Below are positions 2,633 to 18,399 of a stretch of 20,314 nucleotides of DNA, piece after piece. Below the pieces are notes generated by a model. The model saw nothing but the letters and a program-made list of their open reading frames with translations. It had not been told where the DNA came from and searched no databases. Positions within the stretch are counted from its first letter, which is position 1. Each line of letters begins with the position of its first letter. The DNA is taken from positions 460,386-480,699 of the forward strand of contig JANKJI020000004.1 in assembly GCA_024626585.2 (NCBI GenBank). Reading direction: 5' to 3'. This stretch comes from Ginkgo biloba. Its lineage: Eukaryota; Plantae; Ginkgophyta. The position numbers and the translations under genes are program-made.

Positions 2633-3046
2633 TTGGTGGAGAAGCACATCAGTTCCTATAATAAGCTCCCAGATTTGACAAAGTGGACAACATTTTAGGA
2701 TCAAGGTAAGCGCACAGGAACATGCTCTCAGCAAGCAATGGTTCTAGCAGATCACAATGGCATTCGCAGAGTGTACAAACACCAGCCAAGCATCTTACAA
2801 AATGTCATGAAGAAGAAGCCCATACACAAAAGTGCCATTCTTGCTTAAGATCTATTCATTAGTGCTCCGAGAATTTTTTAGCAAATGGCAACAAGGTTAA
2901 AATAATAACTTAGTACTCAGCTTCCCCAAGTTACTTGATGGAGAAGCACACAAGTTCCTTAAAAAGTTCCCACATTTTCCCATGTATCATATTCAGGGCA
3001 TAATTTCATGATTAAAGTGAATGAAAATGTGCTCAACCAACTATTC
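2633..3046. repeat. Dispersed direct repeat pair (~65-110 bp, 302 bp apart) downstream of CDI
   Basis: TTGGTGGAGAAGCACATCAGTTCCTATAATAAGCTCCCAGATTT (from 2633) vs TTGATGGAGAAGCACACAAGTTCCTTAAAAAGTTCCCACATTT (from 2935), with weaker similarity continuing ~50 bp further. Confidence 0.65.
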
Positions 3047-3666
3047 AAGACAACATATGCACAACCTACCGATTACCACAAAAAATATTTCAGAGTCTTG
3101 TATTCAGTGTAAAAGCATATCAAGCAACCAAAATAATTTGCTTCCACAAGGCACATTCGTTAGTGCCCTAGTCAAATATCAACCAACAAGATTGACATAA
3201 CTTCTTGTTAGAATTCCAGTGGAACTGAAACAGATCGTGAAAAAAAAAATCATTTAAACTTGAAATAATGGGGATACAATAGAGCATTCTGCTAGCTACC
3301 AGGCATTACAACAATTTCTTCTGCAAAATGGATGGGACTAACCCTTTTGTCTGAAATATGGATGAATAGAATAATAAACTAAAACAGCTCAAGAACATCT
3401 TCTCCTAAAGCTCCACTGCACATTATAATACATGCAGCTAATGTGCTGCAGTGCTGAATACTTGTAGTAGGAAAACAATATCCTCTCACCGTCCCCATAG
3501 AATAATGCCGCCAAGTAGAATTCTCGATCATGCTGCAATCTAGAATACCTCAATCATGGCCCAATCTTGAAATTCTTGAATACACAGAAACAAAATACAT
3601 AAAAGATACTACTCTAAAGAAGGTCCCTTTAATGCAAATTTTTTGAGATAATCTTGCTAGCATCAA

Positions 3667-4893
3667 CTAGGCCTCAACTGGAGGCTCTTTAAGGCCATTC
3701 ATACCAGCAGTAAGAACCTTCTCCTTCAAGTAAAAACCTAACAACTTCTGCAAAGCATTAACCTCCTTAACCTTACCCTCCAGATCCACAACCCTGCTCT
3801 CAAGTTCATCAGATCTCTCGCGGATCCTATTCTCCAACAACTTTACAAGCTCATCTTGAATAACCCTCTGGATCATCTGGGTCCTTATGTACTCATCCCT
3901 CTCCTTAAGCCAAAGATCTGCAAACTCACAGTCCTTCCACGCCTCAAACCAGGGTCCCCCCAATGTATAATGAATAGCTTTTGGAAGTTTATTCTCATCA
4001 TCGACTTCATTGTGACCAACAAGGAAATTCCAAGCAAACGGAACAGGACCAATGTCATCGTCATCAAGCCACATAAATCGGTGCAAAAATGCACCAGATT
4101 GAGAATTCACAACACTAGGTGTCAATACCCGGTTTTTTGGATGGGAACAGTTATACAGCACCATTGATGACCAATTCTTTCTGGGATACGCTGTTTGCAC
4201 AACCCCATCCATTTTTGTAGTATTCTTGGGAGTATAATCATGCTTAACACACATAATCGCATACTTATCATCTGCAAGCTCAGCCAATTCCCTTATGTCT
4301 GCAGTATAAAGAAAATCACAGTCTATAAAAACTGCCCAGCCTTCGAAACCAGCTAAGAACGGAGTCAAGAATCTGGTAAAGGAAAATTCCGTGCTTTCAG
4401 TTCTATCCCGGTTTCTCCAATAAAGCCCGGTTTTGCGTAAATCTGATTGTTTAATGGGAATTACCTCCACTGGTATGGTCGTATGCTTAAGAATTGAGTA
4501 GCGGCAAACTTCATAAGCCATATCTTCACGCGCATCGTAGCCTACGAAGACCTTAAGTTTGTTTATGGTTTTTCCGCTCCTCGTCACCCCGGGACCTCCG
4601 GCTATGCTCGGAGCCGGGCCAATTGCATGCTCTGAATCAGATAAGCTGGGTTCATTTTGCTTCAAATCCCTAGAACTTGCCAAAGCAATGGAAGAGGATA
4701 CTGCAAAGCCTAGCCCTAGACCGGCTGCCGCTAAGAACACTTTCAAAGTTCTATGGTTCGGAACCAACGGACGTGACTGTCCGTTTCCCGCGGTGAAGAA
4801 CCGAATGCAGAGCTTCGGTTCGGCATTTGGGACGCTTAAAACAGATGTAATTTTGGGGGAAATATGTTTCAGACATTGACGGAAAATGGCCAT
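3667..4893 (-). CDS. CDI: CDI-like (cadmium-induced protein family) nucleotide-diphospho-sugar transferase, GT8-related, with N-terminal targeting/TM extension and C-terminal coiled-coil tail
   Basis: Uninterrupted 408-aa ORF. Residues ~113-335 carry the CDI-family motifs VFVGYDxRED, ESTEFSFTRFLTP, GWAxFxDCDFL (DxD at aa 191-193), KHDYTPK..TKMDG..Q..YPRKNWSSMVLYNC.HPKN, GAFLHRF.WL, WNFLVG and HYTxGGPWFEAWKDCEFADLW, recognised from Arabidopsis CDI (recall, no search run). Confidence 0.93.
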   Translation of the reverse strand: MAIFRQCLKHISPKITSVLSVPNAEPKLCIRFFTAGNGQSRPLVPNHRTLKVFLAAAGLGLGFAVSSSIALASSRDLKQNEPSLSDSEHAIGPAPSIAGGPGVTRSGKTINKLKVFVGYDAREDMAYEVCRYSILKHTTIPVEVIPIKQSDLRKTGLYWRNRDRTESTEFSFTRFLTPFLAGFEGWAVFIDCDFLYTADIRELAELADDKYAIMCVKHDYTPKNTTKMDGVVQTAYPRKNWSSMVLYNCSHPKNRVLTPSVVNSQSGAFLHRFMWLDDDDIGPVPFAWNFLVGHNEVDDENKLPKAIHYTLGGPWFEAWKDCEFADLWLKERDEYIRTQMIQRVIQDELVKLLENRIRERSDELESRVVDLEGKVKEVNALQKLLGFYLKEKVLTAGMNGLKEPPVEA

Positions 4894-5185
4894 AACTAGA
4901 ATTGGTTGAAATCTATGAGAAAGACGGTGAGAATGAACCTTTTAGATCATAATTTGAATTGCTATAATTTTAAGGGAAAATATTTTAATCAAATGAAGGA
5001 AAATGGCCACTCCAGGTATCCATCTAAAGCTCTAGAGAGGTCGAACAAAATGAACCGTTTATGTGACTATTTGGATAGCTTAGGCTAAAATATTTTGATA
5101 ATTTGACGGAAAACGGGCATACCTGGTATCGATCGAAAGCTTTGGAAATGATGAAGAGAACGAAACGCTTAGATCGGCATTTAAT
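4846..5185. repeat. Three degenerate tandem units (~110-117 bp) overlapping the CDI start codon and 5' leader
   Basis: Anchor GGAAAATGGCCAT (4881-4893), GGAAAATGGCCAC (4998-5010), GGAAAACGGGCAT (5108-5120). Each is preceded by AAATAT(G/T)TT and followed by similar GAAA(T/G)CT...GAA(T/C)GAA...TTAGATC-type blocks. Confidence 0.8.
4913..5122 (-). other. Putative 5'-UTR intron (~210 nt) of the CDI-like gene
   Basis: Minus-strand donor CAG|GTATGC (GT at 5122-5121). Acceptor TTCTCACCGTCTTTCTCATAG| (AG at 4914-4913) with a pyrimidine tract, 19 nt before the ATG. No transcript evidence. Confidence 0.45.
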
Positions 5186-5208
5186 CGCCTCTATCAATCC
5201 CTTACAGC

Positions 5209-5283
5209 TCAATTTCCATAGAGATTCGAACCTTCAACCTGAGCGTCTAATTGCTGAAAATGCAGGTGAAGTTCACCAAGCAT
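5209..5283 (-). other. Candidate upstream ORF (24 aa, MLGELHLHFQQLDAQVEGSNLYGN*)
   Basis: GCC-ATG context at 5283 and TGA at 5211-5209. It is a uORF only if transcription starts upstream of 5283, which is unknown. Confidence 0.3.
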
Positions 5284-5339
5284 GGCGATCTGGTAGACGC
5301 AGAGCGATGTAAAAAAAGCTGGCAGTGAGACAGTAGTAA

Positions 5340-5765
5340 CGTGAAACTTAACGGCATTATTGTTCAAGACAAATTCACCTGACGGCGTTACTCGTTGCTA
5401 AGCTGTTCTGACAGTCCGTATTATCGTACAGTTCTGTACTGAAGCTTGGAAACGTCCTACTAACGGCGTTAATGCCCCGATATTGTCGGTGACCTTTAAT
5501 TAGTTAGTTTCTTAACACGTGGACCTTGCTTGACCTCTGTTTCCTTCGTTATATTTTCATTATAAATGTTAAGGAAACGCCGTCAAATAGTGAACTCTTG
5601 TCCCGTTACAAAAGACTACATAGCTCCGCCGTGGTAAATTAATATAGTGGAACTTCGGACATAAGCGTTTAAGTTCTGCTTTAGTTAAATTTTTTATATT
5701 TAAAGGGAAAGTTCCCCTTTGTCACTTAAGTCATCTTACCCGACCCCGTTGAATAACGGCACATG
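5340..5765 (-). promoter_or_regulatory. CpG-rich proximal promoter of the CDI-like gene with MYB/MSA-like AACGG cluster, DRE/AuxRE and G-box/ABRE
   Basis: TAACGGCATT 5349-5358, TGACGGCGTT 5380-5389, TAACGGCGTT 5461-5470, AACGCCGTCA 5576-5585, CCGTTA 5603-5608, CCGTTG 5746-5751, TAACGGC 5754-5760, TGTCGGT 5484-5490 (ACCGAC on minus), ACACGTGG 5515-5522. Confidence 0.55.
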
Positions 5766-8700
5766 GGGCATCCCCAACATTGTCCTTCCCTACATGGCAA
5801 CAATTCCATTAGGAATCTCGGCTTTCATAATAAAAGTGAATATCGATGTGAACTTCTCAAGGGAGGAATGTAGTGGTAATTGAAGGGATGCCATAGTTGT
5901 GGGGACCAAGGGGACTAGAGGGACCAAACACTCACGTAATTGAGTTTTTTTAAACGTGCACGTAATTGTAGAATAGTGTACACACTAGCTTCTTAAATTA
6001 GGATTCCTTCATACTAGAAGTAATTTGTATCTTATAACCCTCATCTGTATATATCTTTCAACCCATTACTATTATTTGCATGTGAGTGTGTGCAATAAGG
6101 GATAAATAAATATGTGAAATGATCTCCAACAAATATTAACATAAAAGCAATGGCATCCTTGAATTCCAAAAGTAGGATTTTTATATATGTAGGGCAAAAT
6201 GGTTTTGCATAGTAAAGGAAGGATTCTTTGTGTTCATTAATGACCCTGTTCATCATATAAAGCATTCACGACCATAAATAAACCATAAAATGTCTCTACA
6301 AAGGGATACACTATTCTTAGGATGCTAACCATGCATGAAGTCTATTTCAATAATTTATGTTAAAAATCAAAAGGATAGTATCAACGTCATAAAAAATAGA
6401 CCATTTCTATATAAAGTGATAAGTATATATTTCTAAAATTAACTCTTTTTAATCCTCTAAGTTCAATCTTATTTAGGTCCTAGTGTGGTTAAAATTATAG
6501 ATTCTCATTGATAGATACAAATAAATGACGATATTAAAGGAGATATAATTTATTGTATACCTAAAGGTCCTAACGATTAAGGATGACTTAAAAATATCTA
6601 TCCACTAGAGTGTAACTAAAGCATGCATAGATATATATCCTAAATAATATCTTAAAAGTTAATCATATTCATACAAGGGGACTTATAGTACATCTAATTT
6701 TAGACTATATATGTGTCTCTTCCATATATGTAGGATATAAAAAAATAATCCACCAAAATAATAAATTCACCCAATTATAGATATGAACTAGATTACCATA
6801 TACAGGGAGCTTATAATGATAGTAATTATTAAGTCTTTATGTATTTTATGGATAATTTGTTTTAATTATATATTAAACACATAGTTAATAAATTGGTTGT
6901 GAATGAATGGTCATATGATGAAGATGTACCTCTTAAAAAATATTGCTAAATCCACCTAGATGTTTATGCCCTAGGTAGTCCATATTATAACAATCATATA
7001 TTTATTAATTATTCTACATTTTATCAACTTATATTCTATTAGATTTATATGGCCTAGGTCTACATTATTCCATTTATGTTGAGATCAAGTCTTCCTAATA
7101 ATATTATAGCAATGACCTAAATCCTATTACTGATTCAATGACTTCCCATATCATACTTATACAACATGGATAGAAATTCAAAAATAAATTAACAAGTTAA
7201 ATTATAACATAAATCCCCATTTATTATATAAACTCAAAGATAAACAATTATAAAATTATTCATTTATCACTTGCATCCATAGATCACAAAACACTTACAT
7301 AATGAATCCAACCATAAACCTTTTCATTAGCTTCACTTAAATTAAATAAATAAAAGAGTCTAATTCATACCACAATTCTCTTATCCTTCAATACTAACTC
7401 TTATAATTATTTAATCTTTCCAACTCTAAAAAAATTAGGTGGTATGATTTATATCTTCTTATCTTCATTCTATCCTAAATTATCTTGTAGTCTACCTATA
7501 ACAAAATATAATAGGTTATTAACCTTATCAATATTTAGTTACATTCTTAGTAACTAATTATTTACATTAATCCCATTAATAATATGCATATCATTTATGA
7601 TCTATTCTTTTAAATAGATCCTTTTAATCAATATTATGGTTGTTTTATGGAAACTAATATCAATTTTAAGGGTGAGCCTAAATCTTGTTGAGGGGGTGTT
7701 TTCCTGTATACCATATTTGAGGTTTATAATTGGTGTTTAAAAAATTAAAAAAATTAATTAGACTCCTCTATGGTTTTATTAATTTTTTGTATATTCTTAG
7801 GAGATGTTAGATTCATTCCTACCTTTAAGAGAAAATAAGGATGTGTTCATCAATATCACCAAAAGTAATTTCTTATTGTTGCCTAAACTATGCCTCAACT
7901 AGTTGATTTTTAACCTCATTTAATTCTCTAGGGATACTCTTCCTATCAATATATCATCTGGTGATAATTATTCAATAATNNNNNNNNNNNNNNNNNNNNN
8001 NNNNNNNNNNNNNNNNNNNNNNNNNNNNNNNNNNNNNNNNNNNNNNNNNNNNNNNNNNNNNNNNNNNNNNNNNNNNNNNNNNNNNNNNNNNNNNNNNNNN
8101 NNNNNNNNNNNNNNNNNNNNNNNNNNNNNNNNNNNNNNNNNNNNNNNNNNNNNNNNNNNNNNNNNNNNNNNNNNNNNNNNNNNNNNNNNNNNNNNNNNNN
8201 NNNNNNNNNNNNNNNNNNNNNNNNNNNNNNNNNNNNNNNNNNNNNNNNNNNNNNNNNNNNNNNNNNNNNNNNNNNNNNNNNNNNNNNNNNNNNNNNNNNN
8301 NNNNNNNNNNNNNNNNNNNNNNNNNNNNNNNNNNNNNNNNNNNNNNNNNNNNNNNNNNNNNNNNNNNNNNNNNNNNNNNNNNNNNNNNNNNNNNNNNNNN
8401 NNNNNNNNNNNNNNNNNNNNNNNNNNNNNNNNNNNNNNNNNNNNNNNNNNNNNNNNNNNNNNNNNNNNNNNNNNNNNNNNNNNNNNNNNNNNNNNNNNNN
8501 NNNNNNNNNNNNNNNNNNNNNNNNNNNNNNNNNNNNNNNNNNNNNNNNNNNNNNNNNNNNNNNNNNNNNNNNNNNNNNNNNNNNNNNNNNNNNNNNNNNN
8601 NNNNNNNNNNNNNNNNNNNNNNNNNNNNNNNNNNNNNNNNNNNNNNNNNNNNNNNNNNNNNNNNNNNNNNNNNNNNNNNNNNNNNNNNNNNNNNNNNNNN

Positions 8701-10409
8701 NNNNNNNNNNNNNNNNNNNNNNNNNNNNNNNNNNNNNNNNNNNNNNNNNNNNNNNNNNNNNNNNNNNNNNNNNNNNNNNNNNNNNNNNNNNNNNNNNNNN
8801 NNNNNNNNNNNNNNNNNNNNNNNNNNNNNNNNNNNGATGTGATTTTTTTGTGTCAGAGAATTCTAAATTTAAGACACAAGAGTGGGTAGGGGAGTTGTGA
8901 ACCCAGGGGGTGTTGTATTCTTACAGACCTATGTACGCAAGGATAGCGTAAGTAAACGTTTAATTAGTGAAAGCTATTTCACATTTTTTTAGATTAGCTA
9001 GGGATTGATTTACCAAATTTAAATAGGTGTTTAATCCAAATAATGATGATAATTTCCTCCCCTGGATCCCAACATAAATCTGGTTTTCATCTTTTCAGGG
9101 CATGATATAAATTCATGCCAATTTAGAACAAAATCTTCTACTAGTAGGTTTTGTAGCACCGGAGGCCACCAGTCCTGTTGAATGTGCAGACATATAGAAT
9201 GGCCTTCAGTCATTAGTGGTATGTTAAGTGGAATATTTTGGATAATGTTTCATTGCCTAAGTTTTCAATTTCCAGGATTTATATTTAAACAAAAGAAAAT
9301 GCACACAGATTAGAATACATTTTCTATACTCTCTCTGTATACATGTGTTTATATAAAAACACACAAAACTTAAAACTAAAGCAGATGTCTATTGCTTTTA
9401 CTAGGAATTAGCCCTGGGATTCCTTTCAACCATCAGATTCAACAATGACGTACCTTACCTTTCTGCTCTGCAAATCTATACCAACAAATCCTTCCTGAAT
9501 TTTAGGTCTGTGCATCTTTTTCACGAGTTTCTTTGATAAAATTTGTGTCCTACTAGCCGATCTAAAGCAATCAAGTTAAGCTGTTGTATGCCACGGGAAA
9601 AATTTGCTTTGTAATGAACGTCGGAAGCCAAATTTCTGGCTGAAAAATGCCTAGAAATTATTAGTTTTAGGCCATGTTTAATATTTGTCAAAAACGCTAA
9701 AATGCAGAGAAATGAATATGCTTTTTAGTTGAAAATCCTATAAACTATTCTCAAATACCAATGTTTGGGCTTTTGTGCTCCAAGCTGTGAATTTGAACTA
9801 AATAATGATCAAATAAGTGAATTCTATTCAAACTTATAGTGAAATAATGGTTAAATATTGTAGGAACAACAATGGATGAACATGTACTTGCAAGATGTAA
9901 ACAGAATATAGAAGATGAAGAAAAAATAACCCGAAATGGTGCAAATAACAGAGAAACCATAGATTTAGGAAAGTATGATGAATTGCTAGGAAACCATAGA
10001 TAAGTACAAAAGGTAATATCATATTTATTGAGTTAGAAGCTTTGAGAGAGGGCCCACGACATATGTTGAGATTTGTGGCTTCCTATAGTTGCGGGGCTGC
10101 CTTGGAGCAATTGCTCTGTTCTGGAAATCAAAATAAATCTTTCCCATTTCTTTTACTTCCGTTGACAATTTCTTCTCAATAATTCTTTGGATTGAATACC
10201 AATTGCAGATACAAGAGTTGTATCTAAGATACAACTTGAAATGCTTTAAGAAAGCATATATCTCGTAACTTGAAATACAAGGTGAAACATAATTATTTTA
10301 AGGCAAGAAATAATATTATTGAGACCCAAAATGGGAATAACTAAAATAATATGTATTAAGTTAATAATTTATAATAAGAAATAGTATTTTATGTAAAATC
10401 ATCAAATGC

Positions 10410-14715: not shown

Positions 14716-15828
14716 TGGCCTATTTGTAATAAGCACCATGAGTAACTTAGTGAGTATGAGGTTTGAATACTATATATATGGGTTGTTTGGAAGACCAATT
14801 CTTTTTTTTTTTATTTGTATGTCCCATAACCTATGTAATAATATCACTAATGTTCTAGTTTGAACTTTTTCCATGTATTGTAATAACCTAAATATTGAGG
14901 CATTGCATTACAAACATAAATTTTGAGTAGCTAACATTATAGGTTATGTTCATGCACACTCACTATTATTATCTTTCAAGTTTTATATATATGACTAGCA
15001 TTAGTAAACCCCAAATGCATAATCAATTAGAAAAACCATAATACAATTCATTATTTCATATAAAAGAAATCTTGTNNNNNNNNNNNNNNNNNNNNNNNNN
15101 NNNNNNNNNNNNNNNNNNNNNNNNNNNNNNNNNNNNNNNNNNNNNNNNNNNNNNNNNNNNNNNNNNNNNNNNNNNNNNNNNNNNNNNNNNNNNNNNNNNN
15201 NNNNNNNNNNNNNNNNNNNNNNNNNNNNNNNNNNNNNNNNNNNNNNNNNNNNNNNNNNNNNNNNNNNNNNNNNNNNNNNNNNNNNNNNNNNNNNNNNNNN
15301 NNNNNNNNNNNNNNNNNNNNNNNNNNNNNNNNNNNNNNNNNNNNNNNNNNNNNNNNNNNNNNNNNNNNNNNNNNNNNNNNNNNNNNNNNNNNNNNNNNNN
15401 NNNNNNNNNNNNNNNNNNNNNNNNNNNNNNNNNNNNNNNNNNNNNNNNNNNNNNNNNNNNNNNNNNNNNNNNNNNNNNNNNNNNNNNNNNNNNNNNNNNN
15501 NNNNNNNNNNNNNNNNNNNNNNNNNNNNNNNNNNNNNNNNNNNNNNNNNNNNNNNNNNNNNNNNNNNNNNNNNNNNNNNNNNNNNNNNNNNNNNNNNNNN
15601 NNNNNNNNNNNNNNNNNNNNNNNNNNNNNNNNNNNNNNNNNNNNNNNNNNNNNNNNNNNNNNNNNNNNNNNNNNNNNNNNNNNNNNNNNNNNNNNNNNNN
15701 NNNNNNNNNNNNNNNNNNNNNNNNNNNNNNNNNNNNNNNNNNNNNNNNNNNNNNNNNNNNNNNNNNNNNNNNNNNNNNNNNNNNNNNNNNNNNNNNNNNN
15801 NNNNNNNNNNNNNNNNNNNNNNNNNNNN

Positions 15829-16580: not shown

Positions 16581-18399
16581 GGGGTTGCCTCACCTATTGA
16601 CAAATTTTGACAGGCAACCGCATCCAACATAGGGGATGACCCAGCGATGATGTCAGTGTAGCTTATCTGCTAAGGTCTTGGGGGCGGCTAGTGACAACTC
16701 CAATTTTCCTAAACCTGACAGTGTTAAGATCGTTGCATTTATTTTAGTCATCCACCGGCTGCATCAATACATGCCCAAGTATTTNNNNNNNNNNNNNGTT
16801 GTTTAATAGAATAACTATGGCACTATATTTATGGCAATGTCTATGTGGCCAACAATCTCCCCATTAATACCTTGGACCTCACGCGAAAACCATTAAGTGG
16901 AAAAATCACAAGTGGAAATGTTATAATTTCACTAGGTGAAATTACAATAAAAAATAACCATTCTTCACCCGAATTTGAACCTATGCCCTATGATTCAAAC
17001 CTGTGCCATGTCATTTTCTAGTTCAATAGATTACCATCATGCCTACATGGAACCTTTTTTTTTTTTTTTTTTCTTGTATTTCCACCTAAAGTGACAATTT
17101 CGTNNNNNNNNNNNNNNNNNNNNNNNNNNNNNNNNNNNNNNNNNNNNNNNNNNNNNNNNNNNNNNNNNNNNNNNNNNNNNNNNNNNNNNNNNNNNNNNNN
17201 NNNNNNNNNNNNNNNNNNNNNNNNNNNNNNNNNNNNNNNNNNNNNNNNNNNNNNNNNNNNNNNNNNNNNNNNNNNNNNNNNNNNNNNNNNNNNNNNNNNN
17301 NNNNNNNNNNNNNNNNNNNNNNNNNNNNNNNNNNNNNNNNNNNNNNNNNNNNNNNNNNNNNNNNNNNNNNNNNNNNNNNNNNNNNNNNNNNNNNNNNNNN
17401 NNNNNNNNNNNNNNNNNGTTAGCATGATCTTCAAAGGAGAAAGAGGGGTCAACATCAACCTCACTACCTATGCAACTCGTTGCACACTAATAGAGGCTAT
17501 TGATGGCCCAACAACACTAATAACATTGAACGAGATGACAACAAGGTACATAAGGCTAAGAGATACCAACAATTTTAGTTCTCTCGTATCTTGGCTATTG
17601 AAATAAGATAATGGGATGTTTGCATGGTTGTTGGAATTTGAGGACAAGATCTCCATGTCTTTTCAAAAGAGTTTAACAACATAAATCTATTAATTACATG
17701 GTTCTTCCTTGTTGTCTTAGGTCATAGGATAGGTAAGACCGACTTCATAAATATGTAACTATAATAGAACCACTTAACAATGGTAAACATGCATATTTAA
17801 ATTTTATTCCTATTGTAGAAATAATAAAGATGAGTTTGATTTAATCTCTGCATGTCTCTCTTACTAATTCTATAGTTATTTTAGTATGAGGGTTTTGATT
17901 CATTTACAAATAGTAGGATTATAAGATAGAGGTGTAAAGGGTAGGTTTTAGTGGGATCTTGTATTTTATTATGCTCCAGTATTGATTATATGTTTAAGGA
18001 AAGTAGTATAACAGAAAAATCAATTGTCATACAATTTAAGTTTCATGGGAAAAAAAATTCCAAGTAACTTGTATTCAATAGACCTAATCACTCTTTACTC
18101 AGTATAGAAAAATAAAGGCTAATACTTATTCTTTCTTTGAAGATAGTACCACATGCACTTGTAGGAAAAAATATGGTAATTACTAATCTCAATATACAAT
18201 GCCTTAGAAGCAAAAATTTTCATAAATGCAATATTAATCTAATCCATATCCACAAGTTAGGAGTTTCATATGCTACCTTGTATAAGAAATCAATACACAG
18301 AATATCTACCATATATAAATAAAAATGTCTATAAGCATACAATAATTTAAACTAAACAACATGAACCATACTAGTCCTATTTCCATAGCCTATGCAGGG

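Follow-up and report, generated by a model that had tools for sequence, protein, structure and literature searches.

The CDI-family glycosyltransferase gene on the minus strand of the 20,314-nucleotide stretch of DNA analysed here (the window) encodes a protein of 408 residues, the first 112 of which (4558–4893) form a leader that is under purifying selection and that resembles an organellar sorting signal. We propose that this leader would be an obligatory, conserved sorting extension of gymnosperm CDI, gained ahead of the ancestral start Met no later than the seed-plant ancestor, and we see about an even chance that it is a bipartite mitochondrial signal for the inner membrane or the intermembrane space (IMS). 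From the protein sequence and its relatives we infer the organelle, the two cleavages, the topology and any substrate.

The window gene is a member of the CDI family, which comprises plant GT-A glycosyltransferases. It is an uninterrupted open reading frame (ORF) of 408 codons (3667–4893, minus strand) with an in-frame stop 17 codons upstream of the ATG, and its GT-A catalytic core (residues 113–335; 3889–4557, minus strand) starts near residue 100–113 with the stretch GGP.VT.SGK...KVFVGYD. A word-indexed protein search returned thousands of plant relatives, named 'protein CDI' by their sources, to which the core is 65–78% identical in angiosperms and 88% identical in Cryptomeria (E down to 1e-137); about 70 columns, among them the DxD motif D191-C192-D193, are invariant over 103 sequences. 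In an AlphaFold2 (AF2) model built on the homologue alignment the core is confident, with a predicted local distance difference test score (pLDDT) of about 85–95, and a Foldseek search with the core put GT8/GT24 GT-A enzymes on top (E 6e-9 to 4e-6, probability 1.0), which agrees with the label 'putative GT8' that Arabidopsis Cdi carries (PMC12168206). The enzymes sharing the core fold are WbbM, GlyE, XXYLT1, the UGGT catalytic domain, LARGE1, glycogenin and LgtC; sequence identity to the solved GT8/GT24 enzymes is, however, 9–19%, and none has the leader of the window protein. Pfam gave only a sub-threshold match, to DUF1514 and in the C-terminal helix, and a sequence search of the PDB gave no match.

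Arabidopsis CDI (At1g64980), a putative GT8 enzyme, is among the closest known systems. The two proteins fall into one family tree and share the D-C-D motif and the invariant columns, yet the Arabidopsis protein has only about 260 residues, lacks both a leader and a C-terminal coiled coil, and is listed as cytosolic on the basis of fluorescent-protein tagging and proteomics (PMC3914213). The window protein is thus longer by 112 residues at the N-terminus and by about 70 at the C-terminus, and the activity of the gymnosperm enzyme is putative: L-galactose (L-Gal) transfer from GDP-L-Gal to side chain A of rhamnogalacturonan II (RG-II) is known from Arabidopsis alone (Peng et al. 2021, cited in PMC12168206). 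The same paper bears out what an earlier, sequence-only reading of this DNA had said of Arabidopsis CDI, namely that it is a short form and an RG-II L-galactosyltransferase.

Conservation supports the leader as a real part of the protein. The same leader is intact in nine gymnosperm homologues of two clades (Picea sitchensis B8LMR9, a Pinaceae-like transcript, Taxus, two from Cryptomeria, Ginkgo and three further transcriptome proteins) and in two Nymphaeales proteins, from Nymphaea colorata and Victoria cruziana, whose leaders are recognisably similar with a longer linker. The nearest relatives of the window protein are Pinaceae sequences, 77% identical overall and 88% in the core, and B8LMR9 aligns with it over 100% of its length at 77% identity. 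The layout proposed by the sequence-only reading, a presequence followed by a hydrophobic segment, recurs in these eleven homologues and therefore goes beyond chance; stops and frameshifts, which were looked for in the leader, were absent from all leader-bearing homologues. Ratios of nonsynonymous to synonymous substitution (dN/dS), obtained by the Nei-Gojobori method for two independent pairs, the window gene with the Pinaceae-like orthologue and a pair from the second gymnosperm clade (clade B), were 0.41 and 0.50 for the leader, 0.040 and 0.055 for the core, and 0.22 and 0.14 for the C-terminal tail, respectively. For residues 52–72 alone the first pair gave 0.16, a noisy value from a small sub-segment. 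The leader is thus under purifying selection, and its contrast in rate with the core is typical of a targeting peptide. A word search with residues 1–112 alone yielded no scoring match and missed the known orthologues as well, which makes it uninformative, and a feature search of the ESM Atlas with the same residues gave no usable match.

Leader and membrane segment are absent in ferns, lycophytes, a moss, Chara and most angiosperms. In a maximum-likelihood tree of the core, in which the order of branching among groups is weakly supported, the window protein groups with Picea, Taxus and one Cryptomeria protein (Cryptomeria A; 99/93), Ginkgo and the other Cryptomeria protein (Cryptomeria B) represent clade B (98/95), and all angiosperm CDI form one clade (97/93) with the leader-bearing Nymphaeales inside it (100/97). 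No leaderless gymnosperm CDI appeared among the best 120 matches of two word-indexed searches; the search with the core only covered proteins of 123–390 residues, and the sole gymnosperm match among its best 120 was a leader-bearing Cryptomeria protein. Since all retrieved gymnosperm CDI carry the leader and the leader-bearing Nymphaeales lie within the single angiosperm CDI clade, the window-type proteins are, on present data, the gymnosperm counterparts of CDI and not an extra copy, and the term paralogue used in the sequence-only reading finds no support. The simplest history would have the leader gained once, before the seed-plant ancestor, and lost within the angiosperms.

The direction of this change is indicated by the start codons. 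Fern proteins start at a Met immediately before GGPV, and as this Met aligns internally, before the same motif, the leader is an extension upstream of the ancestral start. The homologous Met is kept in gymnosperm clade B (IMGGPV) and was lost in the clade of the window protein, whose Met residues are 1, 125, 214 and later, just as the sequence-only reading had it in stating that none lies between M1 and M125. M125 itself lies within the fold, and most relatives have Leu there. Internal initiation that would give a leaderless form was accordingly rejected for the window gene, in which the fern-type Met is gone and the next is M125. In clade B, where the fern-start Met is retained (P0005, P0006, P0007, P0009 and P0010), a leaderless isoform is possible in principle.

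The RNA data bear directly on whether leader and core are made as one. Twenty public runs of one organism contain the stretch, and four of them were mapped onto 2900–6400. Two transcript contigs (3270–5380 and 3363–5394) and unbroken polyA RNA-seq coverage from about 3250 to about 5356 describe a single transcript of about 2.1 kb (3238–5394, minus strand), with its 5' end near 5380–5394 and a poly(A) site at 3238 seen as loose poly-T on 13 reads of a 3'-end library. Splice joints of any kind, including splicing into the ORF downstream of the leader, were not found in reads or contigs over the mapped interval; the gene is therefore intron-free and the leader contiguous with the core in the mRNA, and splicing around the leader was rejected as an explanation. 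The Taxus orthologue is likewise intron-free, its gene range being 1233 nt for 410 residues.

Within the leader, four parts can be told apart. Residues 1–33 (4795–4893, minus strand) are basic, poor in acidic residues, amphipathic and presequence-like, and end at R31-F32-F33/T34-A35. They are followed by a polar basic linker, residues 34–51 (4741–4794, minus strand; TAGNGQSRPLVPNHRTLK), which gives the hydrophobic segment a positive N-flank. This segment, residues 52–72 (4678–4740, minus strand), is rich in Gly, Ala and Leu and ends in A70-L71-A72, with small residues at -3 and -1. A variable, acidic, Ser/Pro-rich linker, residues 73–112 (4558–4677, minus strand), then leads into the conserved GGP(V)VT.SGK at the N-terminal edge of the folded domain. 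Residues 1–51 contain 4 Arg, 4 Lys, no Asp and 1 Glu (net charge +7), so that the basic character with a single acidic residue, the IRFF|TA site and the AxA-type end of the hydrophobic segment, all noted in the sequence-only reading, are present as described.

These properties extend to the other leader-bearing proteins, of which, with the window protein, there are 12. The leader start follows the consensus M-A-x-F-R-Q/H, the stretch before the hydrophobic segment measures 46–67 residues with a net charge of +7 to +11 in all 12, and Arg or Lys occurs within the first 5–14 residues in all 12, with R5 and K9/R9 in the amphipathic start; in the gymnosperm proteins 0–1 acidic residues precede the hydrophobic segment. 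The maximum 18-residue hydrophobic moment is 0.48 in the window leader (range over the 12 proteins 0.40–0.59). The best-conserved island of the pre-hydrophobic part is [R/Q]-x-[F/Y] followed by [S/T]-[S/A]-G-N. At the aligned position, R.[FYL][STA][STAC] is matched by 6 of 10 gymnosperm sequences and two more fit the no-R class, while the Nymphaeales do not match; the plant consensus for the mitochondrial processing peptidase (MPP) and ICP55 is RX(F/Y/I/L)|(S/A)(S/T), plus a no-R class (F/Y)|(S/A) (PMC4986872), and the window site RFF|TA fits it loosely. The hydrophobic segment has a mean Kyte-Doolittle value of 1.86 in the window protein and 1.4–2.0 across the 12, and small residues occupy -3 and -1 after it in every one of them. 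Its summed Hessa value, added up without position weighting and set against no control set of Golgi anchors, is +1.5 kcal/mol in the window protein and +0.8 to +5.1 kcal/mol, hence positive, in all. Clade B and the Nymphaeales have Pro at -5/-6 of the c-region, acidic residues follow downstream of it, and in the Ginkgo homologue just about 13 apolar residues precede SSPSLS. A conserved twin-Arg before the hydrophobic domain was absent from the leader-bearing proteins. In the AF2 model, residues 1–91 have pLDDT below 50, the sole helix of the leader is residues 2–8 and the segment 52–72 is not helical; short strands appear at 102–110, where pLDDT climbs from about 59 to 87.

Such a layout fits that of proteins of the IMS and inner membrane, whose signal consists of a cleavable presequence and a hydrophobic sorting signal (PMC8847149), and here the sequence-only reading agrees with the literature. 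Under this reading, residues 1–33 would act as a basic amphipathic presequence that enters via TOM/TIM23 and is cut by MPP after R-F-F, possibly with trimming by ICP55, and the weakly hydrophobic segment 52–72 would arrest in the inner membrane and halt transfer. This would leave the GT-A domain and the C-terminal coiled coil on the IMS side, either still anchored or freed by a signal peptidase of the inner membrane peptidase (IMP) type after A-L-A72. As the IMS is open to cytosolic solutes, a formerly cytosolic enzyme could be expected to keep its nucleotide-sugar supply. Gaining a presequence is a common evolutionary route for soluble enzymes. The fuller proposal, that CDI of gymnosperms and water lilies is imported by an MPP-then-IMP signal and acts on the IMS side with nucleotide sugars arriving via porin, we put forward tentatively, its chances being somewhat short of even. 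Known counterparts are the bipartite presequences of yeast cytochrome c1, cytochrome b2 and Mcr1 and of mammalian Smac/DIABLO, in which an MPP-type presequence precedes a sorting segment of moderate hydrophobicity and a site of the signal-peptidase type (PMC8847149); the dimensions are alike as well, the predicted cuts in the window protein lying at about 33 and 72. There is, however, no sequence homology with them, a glycosyltransferase cargo has no known precedent in the IMS, and import and cleavage of the window protein are predictions. Plant IMP substrates are listed as unknown in the same source.

Several points weigh against a mitochondrial signal. Residues 1–33 of the window protein have only 2 Arg, the other basic residues being Lys or His; the +1/+2 residues T-A match the MPP/ICP55 motif loosely; and the -3 Arg is missing in Taxus, both Cryptomeria proteins (A and B) and Ginkgo. 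The crude manner in which the Hessa sums were obtained counts in the same direction. To our knowledge no glycosyltransferase of the IMS has been described, and we can name no acceptor there. Peng et al. are also said to have reported, in their 2021 study, a Golgi localisation of CDI. The Arabidopsis enzyme is reported to add L-Gal to RG-II, a Golgi product (PMC12168206), and localisation predictors are less reliable far from their training species (PMC11581415). Moreover, if leader-bearing CDI is the sole form in gymnosperms and these plants also make RG-II, that role argues for a Golgi anchor.

Such an anchor, of type II and in the Golgi or endoplasmic reticulum, would make residues 1–51 a basic cytosolic tail, 52–72 a signal anchor and 73–112 a stem, with the GT-A domain in the lumen adding L-galactose to RG-II; we regard this as rather unlikely, though likelier than the other alternatives. 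Plant Golgi glycosyltransferases are as a rule built from a tail, one hydrophobic segment, a Ser/Pro-rich stem and a GT-A domain, the flanks of the window segment (positive on the N-side, acidic on the C-side) suit an N-in orientation, and the mean Kyte-Doolittle values attain the usual membrane threshold in most sequences. A transporter for GDP-L-Gal is known in the Golgi, and among the matches listed there seems to be no other gymnosperm CDI. The product, too, points that way, as RG-II, to whose side chain A Arabidopsis CDI transfers L-Gal, is Golgi-made (PMC12168206). The type II pectin enzymes of the Golgi, RGXT of GT77 and GAUT of GT8, share with the window protein both this order of parts and the link to RG-II; they differ in that the window segment is weak, Gly-rich and provided with a cleavage-type c-region, and in that the rest of the CDI family is soluble. 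Indeed, in some orthologues the hydrophobic stretch comes to about 13 residues before a polar, Pro-containing tail, the Hessa sums are positive throughout (on that crude scale), and a permanent anchor leaves the universal small residues at -3/-1 unexplained. The short Gly-rich segment together with these residues appears to favour a c-region of the signal-peptidase type over a permanent Golgi anchor. A nearly acid-free tail of this length, with an amphipathic start and an R-x-F/Y|S/T island, likewise suits an organelle presequence better. The Golgi assignment has further to contend with relatives in ferns, lycophytes, a moss, Chara and most angiosperms that have no membrane segment, with the listing of the Arabidopsis protein as cytosolic (PMC3914213), and with the core tree, in which no rate shift hinting at adaptation to a lumen was seen.

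Plastids offer another destination, which we judge quite improbable: a transit peptide joined to a Sec-type thylakoid-lumen domain that the thylakoid processing peptidase would cut after A-L-A, or else dual targeting to plastids and mitochondria. The classical lumen layout, as in the bipartite transit peptides of plastocyanin and the PsbO/P/Q type, is an acid-free, Ser/Thr-rich part followed by a hydrophobic Ala/Gly/Leu-rich domain with A-x-A at its end, and known plant lumen proteins far outnumber bipartite IMS proteins. Dual-targeted proteins have a mitochondrial-like RX(F/L)|(S/A) site (PMC4986872), and the roughly 50 residues before the hydrophobic part come near the mean transit-peptide length of 56 (PMC8847149). 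Transit peptides, however, usually begin uncharged, and N-terminal Arg favours mitochondria (PMC8847149), whereas all 12 leaders have Arg or Lys in the first 5–14 residues of an amphipathic helix in place of an uncharged, hydroxylated N-terminus. The conserved site is mitochondrial in type and unlike the stromal consensus (V/I)X(A/C/M/S)|(A/S/V) (PMC4986872), and the hydrophobic domain is not preceded by a conserved twin-Arg. The charged amphipathic N-terminus, unlike that of chloroplast transit peptides, would thus favour a mitochondrial presequence. Finally, the leader could be a non-functional or lineage-specific artefact, a repeat-derived 5' readthrough or a wrong start ahead of a protein that truly begins at the core. 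The ATG and the first 14 codons do lie inside one of three tandem repeat units, the 5' untranslated region (UTR) is long and has seven upstream ATGs, and AF2 gives the leader low pLDDT. Yet the leader, its first 14 residues included, occurs in Picea, Taxus, both Cryptomeria genes, Ginkgo and the Nymphaeales, its dN/dS is below 1, the next Met belongs to the fold, and repeat unit 3 resembles the start region of an orthologue, so that the repeat is not the source of the leader. Conservation and dN/dS effectively rule out a non-functional leader, and we find the artefact barely credible.

Very few enzymes have been assigned to RG-II synthesis. CDI, on which pollen tubes depend, is among them, and its location is puzzling: RG-II assembly takes place within the Golgi, but the Arabidopsis protein lacks a membrane segment and appears in listings as cytosolic. 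A leader-bearing CDI was apparently present in the seed-plant ancestor; gymnosperms and Nymphaeales retain the leader and other angiosperms have lost it, and its conservation suggests that gymnosperm CDI may act in a compartment other than that in Arabidopsis. As a Golgi anchor, the leader would show an ancient route of CDI to its substrate and raise the question of how the angiosperm form copes without it. If, on the other hand, the leader is the bipartite mitochondrial signal, the protein would be the first IMS glycosyltransferase, plant IMP would gain a first candidate substrate, and CDI would have, or would once have had, a second acceptor besides Golgi-made RG-II. The main text of a Marchantia preprint does not mention Cdi.

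The C-terminal part, residues 336–408 with the stop codon (3667–3888, minus strand), is a long helix (residues 325–396 in the AF2 model, pLDDT 96–98) and probably a coiled coil that serves oligomerisation. Its conservation extends from gymnosperms to ferns, a lycophyte and Chara, but angiosperm CDI lacks it, a distribution that points to a helix older than the leader and later lost in angiosperms.

The 5' UTR of about 500 nt (4894–5394, minus strand) contains seven upstream ATGs, each closed before the main ATG, which itself is flanked by G at both -3 and +4. Orthologue transcripts have, in comparison, 5' UTRs of 134–289 nt with 1–2 upstream ATGs, and the long 5' UTR of the window gene may subject it to translational control. 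Across its border with the coding region lie three degenerate tandem units of 110–117 nt (4853–5190, minus strand) with 61–65% mutual identity. The proximal unit contains the main ATG and the first 14 codons, and the distal one (unit 3) holds a decayed copy of the start in the form of an 11-codon upstream ORF (5120–5085) that echoes the protein's own start. Because unit 3 resembles the stretch around the start codon in L001, the transcript of the Pinaceae-like orthologue (86% over 35 nt), the repeat has the look of an old segment of 5' UTR plus start that was duplicated locally, and not of the origin of the leader. Birth of the leader from repeat DNA was rejected on this resemblance and on the conservation of the first 14 residues in Picea, Taxus and Cryptomeria. 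An inverted repeat (4649–4678/5027–5056, 77%) was treated as chance.

The CDI gene appears isolated, as the window contains no other N-free ORF of at least 110 residues; 3192 of its 20,314 bases are N (masked or gaps), in runs at 629–737, 1291–2062, 7980–8835, 15076–15828 and 17104–17417 and in smaller ones. A 106-residue antisense ORF with a TTG start (4559–4879, plus strand) was dismissed as a mechanical ORF with no support. At position 4589 the assembly has C on the plus strand, as opposed to A in all RNA reads and both contigs; in the gene, on the minus strand, this changes the codon GGG to GTG and hence G102 to V, which restores the orthologue consensus GGPVVT, and the mismatch reflects an error in the assembly or else a difference fixed between strains. 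Further single-base differences, at 3617, 5068 and 5144 in the 3' and 5' UTRs, occur in some of the RNA reads and are probably polymorphisms.

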